Shown: piece after piece, positions 52,003 through 58,560 of the stretch
Numbering within the stretch: position 1 is the stretch's first letter
How the letters are laid out: each line of letters opens with the position of its first letter
IMG/VR virus record: IMGVR_UViG_3300001460_000004
Span: 166,037 to 230,036 of that record
Length of the DNA: 64,000 nt
Reading direction: 5' to 3' (one strand)
The notes under the pieces: generated by a model
What the model was told of the DNA's origin: nothing
What the model saw: only the letters and a program-made list of their open reading frames with translations
Database searches by the model: none
Position numbers and translations under genes: made by a program

Positions 52003-53145
52003 ATGTTTTTTAGCATTAGCAGAGTACATGATCAACGTTTTCCATACCACACACCTTTAGGAGATACTCGTTGGATATGTTCACATGATGAAGGCTGGCA
52101 AGTTTATAACTCTCCCTCTGCACCGCTGCGGAAAGGCTATGTTGTTGGCAATCACAAAAATGCTAATAGTTTAACAATTACTATACATAAAGATAAAGTT
52201 ATACTACAACATGAAAACATGCGTAGTTTTCCACTGTGGTGGTATCCTAAACGTGCAGTATTAACCAATTTAAGTATACTTGATGAATTTAATGTTGAAA
52301 CAATATTTGTTGATCAACAAGTAACCTTGCAAGGACTTAGTTTAAAATTACACAAAATAGATCCACTTGGTGATATAACTCATATTAAACCTAACAGCAA
52401 AACCATTACCCAGGTTGTTAATGAAACAAAGTCAATACTAACAGAAACATGCATTGATTTCTTTACACAATACAAAAACGTTAATTTATTTGTTACTGGT
52501 GGCATTGACACAATGTTATTGCAAAGTATAATTGATTCTTCAGGGTTGCATTGTAACACAATTGATCGTGAACATTTTGAGTATGACTTGTTTACTAACA
52601 AAAACATAGAACAGCTACAAGAACTTCACTGGGCATACAAGCAAATACATCATTGGCGTGGTCCAAACATATTAATGACTGGGGGGTGCGGAGATGAGTT
52701 TATGATGCGTGGCCCAAACATGGTTGGGTTGTATTGTGCATGGCATAACATTGACATACTTGATATTTTACGATTAACTAAAAACCAGTATCATAGTGTT
52801 TATTATCTTAAAGATAAAAATGTTCGTGTGTTTGATGATCTTTGGAAAAATCGATGGGAATGGCAAGATCGACTCCCTACATATAAAGACTTAGTTGAGT
52901 ATATTCTCAATTATAATGCTAACGATCACCAGCATTGGCACCTTGGTAATACCCTTACATTTACGCCGTTTAAAAATATTGATCTTACTAAATTATTGTT
53001 GCAACTGAGTCCAGAGCAGCTAACAACACAATTTACTGATGCAAATGTAAACAAACAAATAATATATAACTTATCACCTAATAGACTTAAAGAAGTAAGC
53101 GAGTTTAAAAATATTATGACCCGGGGCAATCTTGTGGTTAAATAA
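52003..53145 (+). CDS. Asparagine-synthetase-like (PP-loop) ATP-dependent ligase
   Basis: LFVTGGIDT (cf. SGGxDS) and LMTGGCGDE (cf. GxGADE); no N-terminal catalytic Cys. Confidence 0.55.
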   Translation: MFFSISRVHDQRFPYHTPLGDTRWICSHDEGWQVYNSPSAPLRKGYVVGNHKNANSLTITIHKDKVILQHENMRSFPLWWYPKRAVLTNLSILDEFNVETIFVDQQVTLQGLSLKLHKIDPLGDITHIKPNSKTITQVVNETKSILTETCIDFFTQYKNVNLFVTGGIDTMLLQSIIDSSGLHCNTIDREHFEYDLFTNKNIEQLQELHWAYKQIHHWRGPNILMTGGCGDEFMMRGPNMVGLYCAWHNIDILDILRLTKNQYHSVYYLKDKNVRVFDDLWKNRWEWQDRLPTYKDLVEYILNYNANDHQHWHLGNTLTFTPFKNIDLTKLLLQLSPEQLTTQFTDANVNKQIIYNLSPNRLKEVSEFKNIMTRGNLVVK

Positions 53146-53149
53146 TTAT

Positions 53150-53224
53150 CTGAAGCGTGGCAGAGTGGTTATGCACTTCTCTAGGGGAGAAGACTACGGA
53201 GGTTCGAATCCCCCCTTCAGACCA
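53150..53224 (+). tRNA. Atypical tRNA with AGG anticodon (Pro-type) and irregular acceptor/T-stem junction
   Basis: D-arm GCA/TGC with GG, anticodon stem CTTCT/AGAAG with loop CT-AGG-GG, GGTTCGAATCC T-loop, CTGAAG/CTTCAG acceptor pairing, encoded ACCA. Confidence 0.75.
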
Positions 53225-53238
53225 AACAGAGGAAAATA

Positions 53239-53943
53239 ATGAAACGTATTGGCTTTTATGGACACAGTGCTGCATGTTGGGCAAACTTCCCTATATATGA
53301 CCAAACTAGCTTTATTGATATGACTATTGAAAAAACTGGCTATAAACTGGTCAATAAAGGTGTTCCGCAAGGTTCACAAGAACGTATACTATTTGAATTA
53401 AAAAAAACTAAAAAGCTAGACTTTGCAATAATATTTCATAGTATCCCAAAGTTTGTTTTCTTGCCCACAGCAGATCGTGATGTAGACATAAATGATATTG
53501 ATCAACGAAAATGTACATACATGTGGAAAGAAAAACAAGAACGCAACGAACTTGAATCAATGCGAGATGATTATTTTAACTACGGTGGAATAAAGGAAGC
53601 ATTTGGAGATATCAAAAACTTTATTACTACGTTTGCAAGTTACAGGGAATATTTGCATCATCCAGATTTACAAATGAATAGATTTTTTGGTGCATTAGTG
53701 CAAATCGATCAGTACGTAACACATATGAAAATACCCACTATACACATTTACGGCACAAAGCATATACCAAATTGGTTTGAATTTAATAAAACAAGTTTGC
53801 AACGACCAGACATACACGAGCTATGTGAGCAACACTACCAAGGGGGTTATCCAAATAACATAAGTGCCGAAGGACAACATATTATTGCTGAAGAGTTGAT
53901 TAATCAACTTTACATACTTGACGAAGATCATCATTTAGATTAG
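53239..53943 (+). CDS. SGNH-like hypothetical protein
   Basis: FYGHSA, NKGVPQGS; SD GAGG. Confidence 0.5.
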   Translation: MKRIGFYGHSAACWANFPIYDQTSFIDMTIEKTGYKLVNKGVPQGSQERILFELKKTKKLDFAIIFHSIPKFVFLPTADRDVDINDIDQRKCTYMWKEKQERNELESMRDDYFNYGGIKEAFGDIKNFITTFASYREYLHHPDLQMNRFFGALVQIDQYVTHMKIPTIHIYGTKHIPNWFEFNKTSLQRPDIHELCEQHYQGGYPNNISAEGQHIIAEELINQLYILDEDHHLD

Positions 53944-53953
53944 GAGAAATTAA

Positions 53954-54307
53954 ATGGGAATTAAAGCAGGCAAAGTATGGGGAAACACAGAGTTAATCCA
54001 TGCTAATGGTGTATTAGAGTTTCACCGTATTGAGTTTAATGCAGGATATAAATGCAGTGAACATGAACATAAGTTTAAATGGAATGGGTTTTTTGTTGAA
54101 TCAGGAAAAATGATTGTTCGAGTTTGGCAAGATGATCAAGGATTGTTAGATGAAACTATTCTTGAAGCCGGAGACTTTACACAAGTAAAGCCTGGAAAAA
54201 TTCACCAGTTTGAAGGTTTAGAGGATGGTGTCGCTTTTGAACTATATTGGGCAGAATTTAATCACGATGACATTGTTCGTCGGACTAGCGGCACAGAGGT
54301 AAAATAA
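53954..54307 (+). CDS. Cupin (sugar-isomerase-like)
   Basis: CSEHEH, ESG, KPGKIHQF. Confidence 0.75.
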   Translation: MGIKAGKVWGNTELIHANGVLEFHRIEFNAGYKCSEHEHKFKWNGFFVESGKMIVRVWQDDQGLLDETILEAGDFTQVKPGKIHQFEGLEDGVAFELYWAEFNHDDIVRRTSGTEVK

Positions 54308-55551: not shown

Positions 55552-56841
55552 ATGAAATACATTACAGCAGCACTAGCAGCTTTATTCCCACTTGTCCTAT
55601 CAGCACAAACATACACTAGCGAAGTAGCAGATATCATCAACGATAACTGTGTAGTGTGTCATCGTGCAGGCGGCATTGGGCCAATGAGCTTTGAAACATA
55701 CGAGCAAGTAAGACCTTGGGCACCATTAATATCACTTAAAGTAATGAAAAGAGAAATGCCACCATATGCGTATGACCATGGCATTGGAATTCAAGACCTT
55801 CAAGGTGATTGGCGCTTATCACAAAAAGACATAGACGCAGTAGTTGAGTGGGTAGATAACGGAGCAAGTTATGGAGATCCAGACAAGGTAGTACAGCCAG
55901 CAAATTTACGTGATCCAGAAGCATGGAACTTTGAAGGAGACTTTGGCGCACCGGACACAATTATTGCAAGCGTAGCAATAGATATTCCTGCAAGCGGCAA
56001 CGACTTGTGGCATAAGCACAATGTTCCAACAGGACTAAGCGAAGACCGTTGCATTAAAGCAGTACAAGTTAAACCACGTGGCGATGCAAAATCAGTAGTA
56101 CATCATGCCAACTCAAGTATTATAACTGAGGGAGGCAGACAAGGTATGCTAACTGAGTATGCTATGGGAAAGTGGGGAGAGATAGTTCCAGAAGGAGTAT
56201 GCAGAACTATCCCAGCAAACGCAGAAGTAGCATGGGATATTCACATGTTCCCAGGTGGACTTGGAGCAATGGCACCAGGATCAGTTATTCGAGACAACGT
56301 GGTAGAGATTGGTCTTTGGTTATACACCGAAGAGGAAAGCCAAGAACTGAAATACAAACAAGATTTGAGTTTGTATCGCCTGGGCGATCAGGACGATATT
56401 ACTATCCCACCACACGGCTATTACATGACACAAGGCTTCCACAGTTTTGATCATCCAGTTAGACTAGATAGTTTTCAACCACACGGACACTTGCGTATGA
56501 ACGCAGCAAGTTTGGAAATATTCTATCCAGAGACAGGACGCACAGAACAGATTAGCCAAGTAAGTAATTGGAGTGCAACATGGCATCACAGTCATTTGTA
56601 TGACCCGGACGTTGCACCACTCCTACCAGCTGGAGCAGTTATTGTTCTAAAGCAATGGTATGACAACACAGCAGAAAATCCAAACAATCCAGATCCTGAT
56701 ATGTGGGTAATGGGCGGTTCACGTACAGGTGATGAAATGACCCATGCATGGCTTGCTATCACACACTTAGACGATGAAGGATACAACAAACTAAAGGAAG
56801 AAAGGAATGGCATATTCAAGCAAAGTATTGGATCATTATGA
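55552..56841 (+). CDS. Secreted c-type-heme / Cu type II monooxygenase (PHM-like)
   Basis: Signal peptide, CVVCH heme motif, VVHHA (CuH), PHGH and DEM (CuM). Confidence 0.75.
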   Translation: MKYITAALAALFPLVLSAQTYTSEVADIINDNCVVCHRAGGIGPMSFETYEQVRPWAPLISLKVMKREMPPYAYDHGIGIQDLQGDWRLSQKDIDAVVEWVDNGASYGDPDKVVQPANLRDPEAWNFEGDFGAPDTIIASVAIDIPASGNDLWHKHNVPTGLSEDRCIKAVQVKPRGDAKSVVHHANSSIITEGGRQGMLTEYAMGKWGEIVPEGVCRTIPANAEVAWDIHMFPGGLGAMAPGSVIRDNVVEIGLWLYTEEESQELKYKQDLSLYRLGDQDDITIPPHGYYMTQGFHSFDHPVRLDSFQPHGHLRMNAASLEIFYPETGRTEQISQVSNWSATWHHSHLYDPDVAPLLPAGAVIVLKQWYDNTAENPNNPDPDMWVMGGSRTGDEMTHAWLAITHLDDEGYNKLKEERNGIFKQSIGSL

Positions 56842-57181
56842 AAATCCAAGAAACGTAGGAAAATGGGATCCTGCAGATAATATTGGCACAGGTATGGTAG
56901 GAGCGCCTGCCTGTGGCGATGTTATGCGTCTACAAATTAAAGTAGAAGATAACATAATCACTGATGCTAAGTTTAAAACATATGGGTGTGGTAGTGCTAT
57001 TGCAAGTAGTAGCTTACTCACTGAATGGGTTAAAGGAATGACATTAGAAACAGCAGGTGAAATAAAGAATATAGATCTTGCAGAAGAACTTGCATTACCT
57101 CCAGTTAAGATACATTGCAGTGTATTAGCCGAAGATGCTATTAATGCTGCAATAAAAGATTATACGGATAAACAACAATAA
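56807..57181 (+). CDS. iscU: Fe-S scaffold protein IscU
   Basis: YSSKVLDHYENPRNVG, GAPACGD, GCGSAIASSS, LPPVKIHCS. Confidence 0.95.
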   Translation: MAYSSKVLDHYENPRNVGKWDPADNIGTGMVGAPACGDVMRLQIKVEDNIITDAKFKTYGCGSAIASSSLLTEWVKGMTLETAGEIKNIDLAEELALPPVKIHCSVLAEDAINAAIKDYTDKQQ

Positions 57182-57251: not shown

Positions 57252-57449
57252 ATGAACAATCAACAAAATATAGCACAAACACTTCAAGCCGCCAGTGACA
57301 TGTGTAAACAAGCTAAAAACAAAGAAGAATTAGAGCGAGTCTTAAGAGTAACCAATGATCTTATTACTTGGACTGCTAGTCAATTGACCAAAGAAGATAC
57401 AACTATTGATATTAAATCAATTTGGAGAAAAGTTAACGAAAAAGTGTAA
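57252..57449 (+). CDS. Small helical hypothetical protein
   Basis: SD AAGGTG; start moved to ATG 57252. Confidence 0.6.
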   Translation: MNNQQNIAQTLQAASDMCKQAKNKEELERVLRVTNDLITWTASQLTKEDTTIDIKSIWRKVNEKV

Positions 57450-57459
57450 AGGAAAGCAA

Positions 57460-58560
57460 GTGGCATTTAAAATATCCCCTATTAAAGAATTTGGAACATT
57501 TGGTGTATATGTAGATAATGTAGATATGGACCATATGACTGATGATGATTGGTTAGAACTAGGTCAATTAGCAGTGGAAAAATTAGTAATTGTTTTTAGA
57601 AATATTAACATGAGCAAAGGACAATATGCCGATTGGATACCAAAATGGGGACCACTTAAAGCTGATCTTAGAGCTAGATTTAGAAGAAAATACGGACAAG
57701 ACTTTGACGCACTTAAACCTGAAACATGGGAAGGCATTGATGGGGTTGACCGAACATGGTTAGAAACTAGAGGAAATGCACTAGAAGCAGTTGATGATGG
57801 AAGCGGTCGTCACTTAACACGTATATACGGAGGCAAAGACGGACAAGGTAAAATGATGGGTGCCTTTGCATATGGAGAATTGTACTGGCATAGTAACGAA
57901 AGCAGTAGTTTAACTTTTAGCCCAATGGTGAGTTTGTTAGGTTGGGAAGAAATGCATAATAGTTGCACAGGATTTGTACAAACAATTGATTACTACGAAT
58001 CACTAAGTGATAGTTTTCGTCGTGAACTTAATGACATGATTGTAGTACATGGGTATAAAGCAGGCTTTGTAAACGATAACGAACACACTGATGAAGTTTT
58101 TAGTGCCCATGTTAAGATGAGTTTTTGTCCAGATGAAGGTACTGAAACACCATTAGTGTGCGTTGCACCAAATGGTCGTAAAGGGTTGCATTACACAGTT
58201 AATAGTGCAGTAAAGATAAAAGGTATGAGCGACAACGAAAGTAAAAAATTGTTTACACGTTTAGATCACGAATTGTTTACAAGTGAAAATATATTTGATC
58301 ATCATTATGCTGTAGGTTCAAAAGATCTGCTGGTATTTGATAACAGTGTAACATTACATCGTCGAGTAGGTGGAGAACCAGGGCGTAAAGCATTTAGAAT
58401 GCAGTTTGATATATCACCATTGATAGATAAACCCTGGAGACCGTTTTTAGCACATCCTGAATACGATAAAGAATACGTTGAAAAAACACATGATCTTGTT
58501 AATTTAGTAGGAGGCGATTTAGGTGAACGCTTTAAATTGCCTTCAAGGGGTGTGAACTAA
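57460..58560 (+). CDS. TauD/TfdA-family 2OG-Fe(II) dioxygenase
   Basis: LYWHSNE, FDNSVTLHRR; GTG start with SD AAGGA. Confidence 0.8.
   Translation: MAFKISPIKEFGTFGVYVDNVDMDHMTDDDWLELGQLAVEKLVIVFRNINMSKGQYADWIPKWGPLKADLRARFRRKYGQDFDALKPETWEGIDGVDRTWLETRGNALEAVDDGSGRHLTRIYGGKDGQGKMMGAFAYGELYWHSNESSSLTFSPMVSLLGWEEMHNSCTGFVQTIDYYESLSDSFRRELNDMIVVHGYKAGFVNDNEHTDEVFSAHVKMSFCPDEGTETPLVCVAPNGRKGLHYTVNSAVKIKGMSDNESKKLFTRLDHELFTSENIFDHHYAVGSKDLLVFDNSVTLHRRVGGEPGRKAFRMQFDISPLIDKPWRPFLAHPEYDKEYVEKTHDLVNLVGGDLGERFKLPSRGVN

Follow-up and report, generated by a model that had tools for sequence, protein, structure and literature searches.

An irregular phage tRNA-Pro(AGG) gene belongs to a family of non-canonical tRNAs linked to a predicted SGNH-fold, esterase-like gene

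Bacterial and phage elongator tRNAs share the 7/5 cloverleaf captured by Rfam RF00005, with a 7-bp acceptor stem, a two-base connector and a 5-bp T stem forming a 12-bp branch. Departures from this geometry include the 8/4 and 9/3 allo-tRNAs, the selC* tRNA-Cys and minor tRNA-Sec with an A51a bulge, and the 8/5 tRNA-Sec (Mukai et al. 2017, PMC5389517; reviewed in PMC7609411); they place diverse anticodons on one scaffold, and some of them are charged but not used in translation. Charged tRNAs also serve as aminoacyl donors outside the ribosome, as in Gly-tRNA(Gly)-dependent DNA modification by Mom of phage Mu (PMC13219725), an activity established only in 2026. In staphylococci, a non-proteinogenic tRNA-Gly is used by Fem transferases. 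Finally, phage tRNAs with altered anticodon loops evade anticodon nucleases (PMC10264068), and a phage tRNA neutralizes the PARIS system (PMC11464382).

We examined a tRNA-like gene in a window of 64,000 nucleotides (positions 166,037 to 230,036 of IMG/VR virus record IMGVR_UViG_3300001460_000004). A preliminary description, made from the sequence alone, had noted a tRNA with an A34 (AGG) anticodon, a clean D arm, a 5-bp anticodon stem, U33, G37, an encoded A73-CCA and an acceptor/T region that does not fit the 7/5 pattern, preceded by a TAAATA box. Each of these features is present, and the observation is confirmed. ARAGORN finds a single tRNA in the window, tRNA-Pro(AGG), and RF00005 matches positions 53151–53220 at 32.6 bits (cut-off 29, E 0.006). 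The features of the locus are collected in Table 1; related loci and genomes are denoted by L and G numbers, respectively.

Table 1. Features of the locus; positions are those of the 64,000-nt window.
Position	Strand	Feature	Observations
52003..53145	+	Upstream syntenic ORF, 380 aa, no assigned function	No Pfam or PHROG match; homologous-size ORFs (366–368 aa) precede the tRNA in L141, L142 and L228
53137..53144	+	Late-promoter-like box GTTAAATA	One mismatch to the phage's own NATAAATA type; ends 5 nt before tRNA base 1 (C53150); overlaps the stop codon of the upstream ORF (53143–53145)
53150..53224	+	Non-canonical tRNA gene, 75 nt, called tRNA-Pro(AGG)	Identical in five other assemblies
53150..53155	+	Acceptor stem 5' strand CTGAAG	Pairs with 53215–53220; A4:U changes to G:C in L137/L141; whole stem replaced (ATGGTG/CACCAT) in L142
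53156..53158	+	Three-base connector C7-G8-U9	In the family, N7 is C in 25, T in 9, A in 6 and G in 2 members; GT in 42 of 42
53159..53175	+	D arm (G10, 3-bp GCA/TGC stem, loop with G18G19) and A26	Pairs 11:26, 12:25 and 13:24 covary
53176..53192	+	Anticodon arm, 5-bp stem CTTCT/AGAAG, loop C32-U33-A34-G35-G36-G37-G38	Anticodon AGG at 53183–53185; U29:A41 changes to C:G in relatives; C32:G38 can pair and is closed in the minimum-energy fold
53198..53214	+	T arm GGAGG-TTCGAAT-CCCCC	A51.C63 mismatch; stem sequence invariant across the family
53215..53224	+	Acceptor 3' strand CTTCAG (6 nt), discriminator A (53221), encoded CCA (53222–53224)	In the family, the 3' strand abuts CCCCC in all members except L178; CCA encoded in 42 of 42
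53228..53241	+	Ribosome-binding site AGAGGAA and ATG (53239) of the SGNH-like gene	ATG lies 14 nt after the CCA; 10–30 nt in relatives with an upstream tRNA
53239..53943	+	Partner gene, 234-aa predicted SGNH/GDSL-fold, esterase- or acyltransferase-like protein	N-terminal motif GFYGHS; no signal peptide apparent by eye

Compared with a canonical tRNA-Pro, the gene retains the cloverleaf, the G18G19/TTCGAAT elbow, which is conserved in relatives, G35-G36-G37, A73 and C1:G72. However, it has only six acceptor pairs, one extra connector base, a mismatched T stem, a Watson–Crick C32:G38 pair and A34 in place of the usual U/G/C34, whereas canonical phage tRNA-Pro(UGG) genes in related arrays (L156, L172) look normal. 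ARAGORN draws this region with a C.C "pair" at 7:66 and a 4-bp T stem. The alternative 7-bp stem starting at T53149, raised in the preliminary description, is not supported, as the −1:72 pair is C.A in L141 and L142. Base N7 has no partner and does not covary with the base preceding the T stem. The GG-A-GG strand could be read as a 4-bp stem with a bulged A, as in the A51a class, with G8 paired to C65, and eight bases precede the U8 equivalent on the 5' strand, as in these re-partitioned tRNAs; 8/4 tRNAs were reported in alphaproteobacterial phages, and this phage carries an alpha-type tmRNA. G8, A51 and C65 never vary among family members, and nearest-neighbour energy favours the 6/5 reading in 40 of 40 members by 0.65–2 kcal/mol, a margin that is not decisive. 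Nevertheless, only six bases follow the T stem on the 3' strand (seven if C65 is borrowed), so neither an 8-bp acceptor nor a 12- or 13-bp branch can form. There is also no tRNA-Sec-like D arm, and the genetic linkage is to an SGNH-fold gene rather than to SelA/SelB or toxin–antitoxin genes.

The low Rfam score and an unremarkable single-sequence folding energy (z = −0.09) might suggest a decaying pseudo-tRNA or an assembly or sequencing artefact in the C6 run. This reading is refuted by conservation. The identical gene occurs in five independent assemblies (one from ENA, two Logan runs and two other JGI samples), and the flanks diverge while the gene is conserved. Relatives whose partner protein is 75–82% identical keep the structure through compensatory changes, and L142, representing the sister clade (61%), has an entirely different but still paired 6-bp acceptor.

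The gene belongs to a family of at least 42 distinct tRNAs sharing a 6-bp acceptor stem, the N7-G8-U9 connector, the GGAGG/CCCCC T stem and an encoded NCCA end; the window's gene has all of these. The six acceptor positions are 95–100% paired with 2–6 pair types each, and pairing at all six acceptor and five anticodon-stem positions exceeds all 2000 shuffles. The one-base-short 3' strand is present in all 42 members. Members carry ten different "anticodons", including Gly-, Phe-, Tyr-, Thr- and Asn-type loops, and most look Gly-like (G1C2G3, U73, C35C36). The ends co-vary with the loop: A73 and C1:G72 occur only with NGG, members with other loops have U or C as discriminator, and only the Tyr-type members have a long extra arm. 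The T arm is not unique on its own, as it also occurs in some ordinary 7/5 tRNAs. Members and relatives score 25–43 bits on RF00005, many below the cut-off, against 47–75 bits for neighbouring tRNAs.

The family is linked reciprocally to the SGNH-like gene. Of 66 distinct SGNH-family genes, 36 have a member within about 135 nt, located upstream in one monophyletic clade that includes the window, downstream elsewhere, and once on the opposite strand (L147/L250). The remaining thirty lack the exact T-arm motif, although several of these have other irregular tRNAs beside them. An unbiased IMG/VR scan for the T-arm motif found 23 loci with 6-bp-acceptor members, 20 of them 134 nt or less from an SGNH-family ORF; the other three could not be scored, as L238 and L252 sit at the edge of the stored stretch and L278 is only a 1.1-kb stretch. 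Both gene and tRNA were absent from 17 terminase-closest relatives, 185,579 species genomes and GenBank phages; the pair was found only in uncultured phages. A DNA search of the 17 relatives for the locus returned nothing, and an Rfam hit of similar score in G008 (L105) was not a tRNA by ARAGORN. Likewise, blastn of the locus against GenBank phages gave no match, a search for related loci with the upstream 380-aa ORF gave nothing, the exact anticodon-arm pattern yielded only a chance coding hit in IMG/VR, and a 20-mer with the window's own T-arm context yielded none there. Literature searches found nothing on an SGNH–tRNA module.

The partner protein has no sequence match in Pfam, PHROGs, the PDB, GenBank phages or the 185,579 species genomes, and its assignment rests on predicted fold alone. 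The AF2 model has a pLDDT of 89; Foldseek matches GDSL/TesA and AFDB SGNH clusters with a probability of 0.99–1.0, and the top 50 VIA-align matches are all SGNH enzymes (Z 10–13.3). Invariant residues include S10, H67, H169, R49, K55, K56, R80 and R148. S10, in a GxS motif after strand 1, G41/G45 and H169 are in plausible places for the catalytic Ser and His and the oxyanion position, judged from position only.

In the window's clade, the tRNA lies between the promoter-like box and the ribosome-binding site of the SGNH-like gene, and tRNA–mRNA co-transcripts are common, hinting at a cis-acting processing mark, 5' stabilizer or translational control element with no role in trans. We consider this very unlikely, as in most clades the tRNA lies downstream of the gene, often behind its own TATAAATA-type box, and in one case on the opposite strand, and because the encoded CCA, the elbow and the aminoacylation identity ends are conserved, which a processing mark would not need. 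Promoter function of the boxes is itself inferred. ATAAATA occurs 32 times in sense against 6 in antisense upstream of ORFs, 16 times the genome density, and relatives with a downstream tRNA have TATAAATA or CTAAATA 4–5 nt before base 1. However, the window's box departs by one base from the enriched NATAAATA, and TTAAATA alone is only weakly strand-biased (10 sense, 8 antisense), although it is invariant in the window, L174, L141 and L137 while the flanks diverge.

The preliminary description had proposed a tRNA-Pro for CCU, an A34/I34 wobble decoder resistant to host anticodon nucleases, or a tRNA mimic, and this interpretation is only partly supported. The gene is genuine and conserved, and the proline identity set (C1:G72, A73, G35, G36, G37) is specific to the window's clade: C1:G72, A73, G35 and G36, the elements established for E. 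coli ProRS, are present in the window, L174, L137 and L141, whereas L142 has A1:U72 with A73. Of the three options, the mimic comes closest. The decisive context, the linkage to the SGNH-fold gene, was not visible to that description.

A working elongator tolerating the unusual geometry and supplementing CCU decoding, through unmodified A34 or A34-to-I34 editing, cannot be excluded, as the window's copy has the full Pro identity set, U33, G37, a 7-nt loop and an encoded CCA. AGG is kept in four distinct close sequences, and CCT makes up 35% of Pro codons. Moreover, this genome carries a canonical tRNA-Ser(ACU) matched to its commonest Ser codon, AGT (53%), and the same type is present in at least 119 IMG/VR contigs, so A34 decoders of NNU codons may be in use in these viruses; literature searches found nothing on phage tRNA-Ser(ACU). 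The presence of this tRNA-Ser(ACU) also weakens the premise that A34 is exotic here, bacterial A34 tRNAs having been described as almost limited to Arg(ACG). Nevertheless, such a role is unlikely and not supported as the main one. U33 is replaced by A33 in the nearest relatives (L137, L141 and L175), three of the five distinct Pro-type sequences; L142 has U34 (UGG) in a GATGGGC loop; and C32:G38 covaries to G:C, a pair that would close the loop to 5 nt. Across the family, N33 is U in 17, G in 11, A in 6 and C in 5 members, 32:38 is G:C or C:G in 12 of 39, and three members have loops of 5 or 6 nt. The acceptor/T stack is one pair short, the T-stem mismatch lies at a pair contacted by EF-Tu, and the loop is unlike the tRNA-Arg(ACG) loop recognized by bacterial TadA. 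CCT usage in late genes, proposed beforehand as a check, showed no enrichment behind late-type promoters (0.31 against 0.36). Complete genomes G018 and G019 have 43 and 33 ordinary tRNAs, including Phe-GAA, plus the odd GAA-type element. This redundancy is seen in relatives, as the window's genome is 66% complete and shows no other tRNA-Pro.

Rapid diversification of anticodon loops (non-U33, closed 32:38) on a constant body is also what would be expected in an arms race, and the module is accessory and patchy in distribution. The RNA may, through its altered anticodon loop and body, escape host tRNA-cleaving or tRNA-modifying defence enzymes, or act as a decoy that soaks them up, and the SGNH-like esterase might then repair damaged or acylated tRNAs. 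We regard this as unlikely: no defence system or target is identified, escape tRNAs described so far keep a canonical body and remain decoders, whereas here the body itself is non-canonical and the loops include non-U33 and 5–6-nt forms, and escape alone does not explain the tight linkage to one enzyme family.

We therefore favour, with a probability of roughly 0.55, a late-expressed RNA of a previously undescribed class of non-canonical tRNAs, located in the tRNA regions of uncultured jumbo phages, probably charged with proline by the host ProRS and working with the neighbouring enzyme; its decoding surface is not under the usual constraint, and it is unlikely to be mainly a CCU decoder. In this model, a late-type promoter would start transcription at or next to tRNA base 1, the tRNA and the SGNH-like mRNA would be made together, and the (aminoacyl-)tRNA would serve as the dedicated substrate, aminoacyl carrier or ligand of the enzyme, outside normal EF-Tu/ribosome traffic. 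Our analysis establishes the structure, its conservation, the family, the linkage and the redundancy with canonical tRNAs, whereas transcription, RNA ends, any modification, charging, promoter use, exclusion from translation and any chemistry of the enzyme are inferred; adjacency is not proof of a biochemical partnership.

We further speculate, while considering it doubtful on present evidence, that the pair forms a two-part system in which a dedicated tRNA, charged by the host synthetase but kept out of translation by its geometry, hands its amino acid (proline here; glycine, phenylalanine or tyrosine in other phages) to the enzyme, which would transfer it to a phage or host macromolecule, or hydrolyze it in a controlled way, late in infection. 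This would be a new class of tRNA-dependent aminoacyl-transfer chemistry on an esterase fold, with the amino acid reprogrammable through tRNA identity. Mom and the Fem transferases offer a parallel in the use of a charged tRNA as a donor, and the T stem here is weakened where EF-Tu binds, with late timing, as for Mom, inferred from promoter boxes. However, those enzymes have the GNAT fold and use ordinary or near-ordinary tRNAs, no acceptor substrate is known for the SGNH-fold partner, and the window's member is Pro-type.

For annotation, tRNA finders miss or mislabel many members: ARAGORN calls none in several loci, and Rfam scores fall below the cut-off. An "A34 tRNA-Pro" call here should therefore not be read as a decoder. 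The 6/5 geometry is also a natural test case for what RNase P, the CCA-adding enzyme, the synthetases and EF-Tu will tolerate. Phage tRNAs are usually explained by codon supply or, more recently, by escape from tRNA-cleaving defences. Here, a conserved but abnormal body, a freely changing anticodon loop and a partnership with one enzyme family found only in uncultured phages point to a use of tRNA outside decoding. If the partnership is biochemical, it would add an esterase-fold enzyme to the short list of proteins that use charged tRNA for other chemistry.

The window covers the last 64 kb of a 230,036-bp IMG/VR virus record, which is estimated to be 66% complete and has a G+C content of 36%. 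The record belongs to a tailed jumbo phage, as shown by genes encoding ribonucleotide reductase, a DnaB-type helicase, tail-spike-like proteins, a portal protein and a T4-type large terminase. The terminase is 52% identical to that of Pseudomonas phage PA5oct and 70–78% identical to those of many uncultured marine and freshwater phages. An alphaproteobacterial-type permuted (two-piece) tmRNA, matched at 132 bits and assigned the tag ANDNYAPAMAIAA by ARAGORN, suggests an alphaproteobacterial host; a permuted tmRNA is also present in a relative (locus L144). DNA sequencing runs containing the locus are marine and brine metagenomes. A match to the 'freshwater-2' RNA motif (58.9 bits; cut-off 49.9) lies in the structural-gene region of the record. 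Coordinates of the features considered here are collected in the table below.

Coordinates of the tRNA gene, its neighbors and other features (L numbers denote individual sequence stretches; L005 and L010 are parts of the same virus record outside the window)
Feature	Sequence	Position
Non-canonical tRNA-Pro(AGG)	window	53150-53224
Cupin (cysteine-dioxygenase-like PHROG)	window	53954-54307
Weakly cytochrome-c-like protein, 429 aa	window	55552-56841
NifU-like ORF	window	56807-57181
TauD-family dioxygenase	window	57406-58560
Canonical type-II tRNA-Ser(ACU)	L005	5808-5897
Permuted tmRNA	L005	15190-15538
Match to 'freshwater-2' RNA motif	L010	12619-12701
Permuted tmRNA of a relative	L144	812-1182
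Irregular tRNA beside the SGNH-like gene	L144	3740-3815
Irregular tRNA beside the SGNH-like gene	L148	2161-2235
Irregular tRNA beside the SGNH-like gene	L206	1658-1732
Irregular tRNA beside the SGNH-like gene	L158	2222-2297
tRNA-Val(CAC) at the orthologous position	L145	2908-2983
Match to the selenocysteine tRNA model	L160	3363-3447
tRNAs with CUA anticodon	L099 and L100	1501-1574

ARAGORN finds exactly one tRNA in the window, tRNA-Pro(AGG), and the Rfam tRNA model matches it at 32.6 bits, just over its cut-off of 29. The gene fills most of a 93-nt gap between two + strand ORFs. The preliminary description had reported a tRNA with an AGG anticodon and an acceptor/T-arm helix departing from the 7/5 pattern, and this observation is confirmed: direct reading of the bases bears out every feature it listed and also pins down the defect. 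The 5′ strand is CTGAAG followed by C-G-T, the T arm is GGAGG-TTCGAAT-CCCCC with an A opposite a C, and only six bases (CTTCAG) remain before the discriminator A and the encoded CCA. The box GTTAAATA ends 5 nt before base 1. The folding energy of the gene is no better than that of shuffled sequence (z = -0.09), and the minimum-energy fold closes C32:G38; the case for function therefore rests on comparison with relatives, not on energy.

By this comparison the gene is neither an artefact nor decaying. The downstream ORF (234 aa) has more than 100 homologs, and contigs encoding the identical protein come from five further assemblies, all of which carry the identical tRNA. Relatives whose protein is 75–82% identical (loci L137, L141, L174 and L175) keep a 75-nt gene in the same place while their flanks differ, and inside the gene there are compensatory changes, A4:U to G:C in the acceptor stem and U29:A41 to C:G in the anticodon stem. 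A more distant locus, L142 (protein 61% identical), has a wholly different acceptor stem, ATGGTG/CACCAT, which again comprises six pairs, is again followed by C-G-T and again ends in ACCA. The alternative 7-bp stem starting one base earlier, also considered in the preliminary description, fails, because the extra pair is C.A in L141 and L142. At the orthologous position one relative (L145) has a tRNA-Val(CAC) with a 7-bp-length acceptor stem, carrying a U1.U72 mismatch and a C51.A63 mismatch, the mirror image of the A51.C63 mismatch of the family.

The decoding surface, in contrast, is not conserved. Within the closest relatives the loop changes from C-U-A-G-G-G-G to C-A-A-G-G-G-G, so that U33 is lost, and in L142 it is G-A-U-G-G-G-C, with U at position 34 and the 32:38 pair switched from C:G to G:C. 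Only G35-G36-G37 stay fixed, a pattern that fits selection for recognition by ProRS, and perhaps by TrmD, but not selection for codon reading. CCT makes up 35% of proline codons overall and is not enriched in genes behind late-type boxes (0.31 against 0.36). The interpretation offered in the preliminary description was thus only partly supported, as a role in decoding CCU through A34 is unlikely to be the main function of the gene. The record encodes a second A34 tRNA, a canonical type-II tRNA-Ser(ACU) with loop UUACUAA, in a genome where AGT accounts for 53% of serine codons. The same anticodon arm occurs in at least 119 IMG/VR contigs (91 distinct sequences), 112 of which ARAGORN calls tRNA-Ser(ACT). 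An A34 serine tRNA in a split codon box seems widespread in uncultured phages, and no paper on it was found.

Loci were retrieved through the 234-aa protein family, 27 from IMG/VR, 54 from JGI metagenomes and several from ENA/Logan contigs. They showed that the gene lives inside phage tRNA arrays and that a tRNA-like element with the same odd T arm lies beside it. In the clade of the window the element is immediately upstream of the gene, in more distant clades (31–45% protein identity) it is immediately downstream, and in one case (L147/L250) it is on the opposite strand.

Forty-two distinct members of this tRNA family were parsed. The acceptor stem has 6 pairs, which are 95–100% paired with 2–6 pair types each; base N7 is unpaired (C in 25, T in 9, A in 6 and G in 2 members) and is followed by invariant G8-U9. 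The GGAGG/CCCCC T stem is invariant while the T loop varies, the 3′ acceptor strand abuts the T stem in all but one member, CCA is encoded in all, and the discriminator is U in 33, A in 5 and C in 4 members. No shuffle out of 2000 reached the observed pairing at any acceptor or anticodon-stem position, or at 32:38. However, related sequences can exceed such shuffles without structure, and the many independent pair types are therefore the stronger argument. The 'anticodons' are GAA (10), UCC (8), GUA (5), ACC (5), AGG (4) and others; position 33 is U in only 17 of 39 seven-base loops, and three members have loops of 5 or 6 bases. The commonest type looks like a glycine tRNA (G1-C2-G3, U73, C35-C36) but with G33, the GUA type has the long extra arm of bacterial tyrosine tRNAs, and only the NGG type has A73 and C1:G72. 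The aminoacylation ends thus track the loop, which suggests, by inference, that charging matters.

Two readings of the fold at the seventh level are compatible with these data: a 6/5 branch with an internal A.C mismatch, or G8 paired to the last C of the CCCCC run of the T stem with a bulged A51, resembling the 'modified 8/4 with A51a bulge' class of Mukai et al. (PMC5389517). The bases concerned never vary, so covariation is silent, whereas nearest-neighbor energy favors the first reading by 0.65–2 kcal/mol in 40 of 40 members. Either way the branch is shorter than the canonical 12 pairs.

The linkage between the RNA and the gene is reciprocal. An unbiased IMG/VR scan for the T-arm motif returned 47 loci, of which 23 hold 6-bp-acceptor members; 20 of these lie 134 nt or less from an ORF matching the family profile (E 1e-53 to 1e-97), and the remaining three sit at the edge of their sequence stretch or in a 1.1-kb stretch. 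The other 24 hits are ordinary 7/5 tRNAs or unrelated sequence that happens to share the T arm; the A.C mismatch alone is therefore not diagnostic. On a tree of 66 distinct family proteins, members occur in both deep clades and the 'upstream' arrangement is one clade. In clades of the gene that lack the GGAGG/CCCCC arm, several neighboring tRNAs are still irregular (L148, L206, L158 and L144): those of L148 and L206 are Gly-like with G33 and an 8-bp acceptor with a one-base connector (a tRNA-Sec-like 8/5 branch), and that of L158 has an 8-base anticodon loop. In another phage tRNA array next to the module (L160), a match to the selenocysteine tRNA model lies just over its cut-off (48.4 bits against 47). 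Both the gene and the RNA are missing from the 17 terminase-closest relatives, two of which are at least 90% complete, from 185,579 species genomes and from 50,697 GenBank phage records.

Two complete genomes that carry the module have 43 and 33 ordinary tRNAs, including tRNA-Phe(GAA), and also keep the odd GAA-type element, a redundancy with canonical tRNAs. This element is not called by ARAGORN, and Rfam scores it at 25–27 bits against 43–75 bits for the rest; across loci, members score 25–43 bits and canonical neighbors 47–70 bits. tRNAs with a CUA anticodon, labeled 'Pyl' by ARAGORN, occur in terminase relatives (L099 and L100) and in the tRNA array of a complete 364-kb genome (G018), and may be amber suppressors. 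The genome of the window itself reads well under the standard code, being 92% coding with TAG the rarest stop.

The AF2 model of the 234-aa protein is confident (pLDDT 89), and Foldseek and an independent all-against-all structural search agree on the SGNH/GDSL esterase/acyltransferase fold, to which all of the top 50 matches belong (Z 10–13.3). There is no sequence-level match to Pfam, PHROGs or the PDB, so that the assignment rests on the predicted fold. Invariant residues include Ser10 in a G-x-S motif after the first strand, His67, His169 and a set of basic residues, R49, K55, K56, R80 and R148. Aminoacyl-tRNA is an ester, and an esterase/acyltransferase fold is therefore a chemically sensible partner, although this link is an inference. 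Just downstream lies a run of likely auxiliary metabolic genes, listed in the table.

The phage's own late-type box NATAAATA is strongly enriched and strand-biased upstream of ORFs. The box preceding the tRNA in the window differs from it by one base and is conserved with fixed spacing in near relatives, and several members that lie downstream of the gene have TATAAATA or CTAAATA 4–5 nt before base 1. By analogy with T4 late promoters, transcription would start at or next to base 1, and such a transcript would not need RNase P; we regard this as a lead and not a result.

The RNA passes the generic tRNA model but fails the defining 7/5 geometry. It is not an 8/4 or 9/3 allo-tRNA, but resembles those classes in being an irregular scaffold with diverse anticodons, some of which are charged but not translated (PMC5389517, PMC7609411). 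The closest functional precedents are non-ribosomal uses of charged tRNA, namely phage Mu Mom, which moves glycine from Gly-tRNA to DNA (PMC13219725), and the staphylococcal cell-wall tRNA-Gly species. Anticodon-nuclease escape (PMC10264068, PMC11464382) remains a live rival, and no paper describing this module was found. The existence of the family and its linkage to the gene are well supported by the analysis, whereas the mechanism, including charging, promoter use and any chemistry of the partner protein, is inferred. We conclude that the element is best described as the proline-type member of a new, phage-only family of 6/5 tRNAs that travel with a gene of predicted SGNH fold.
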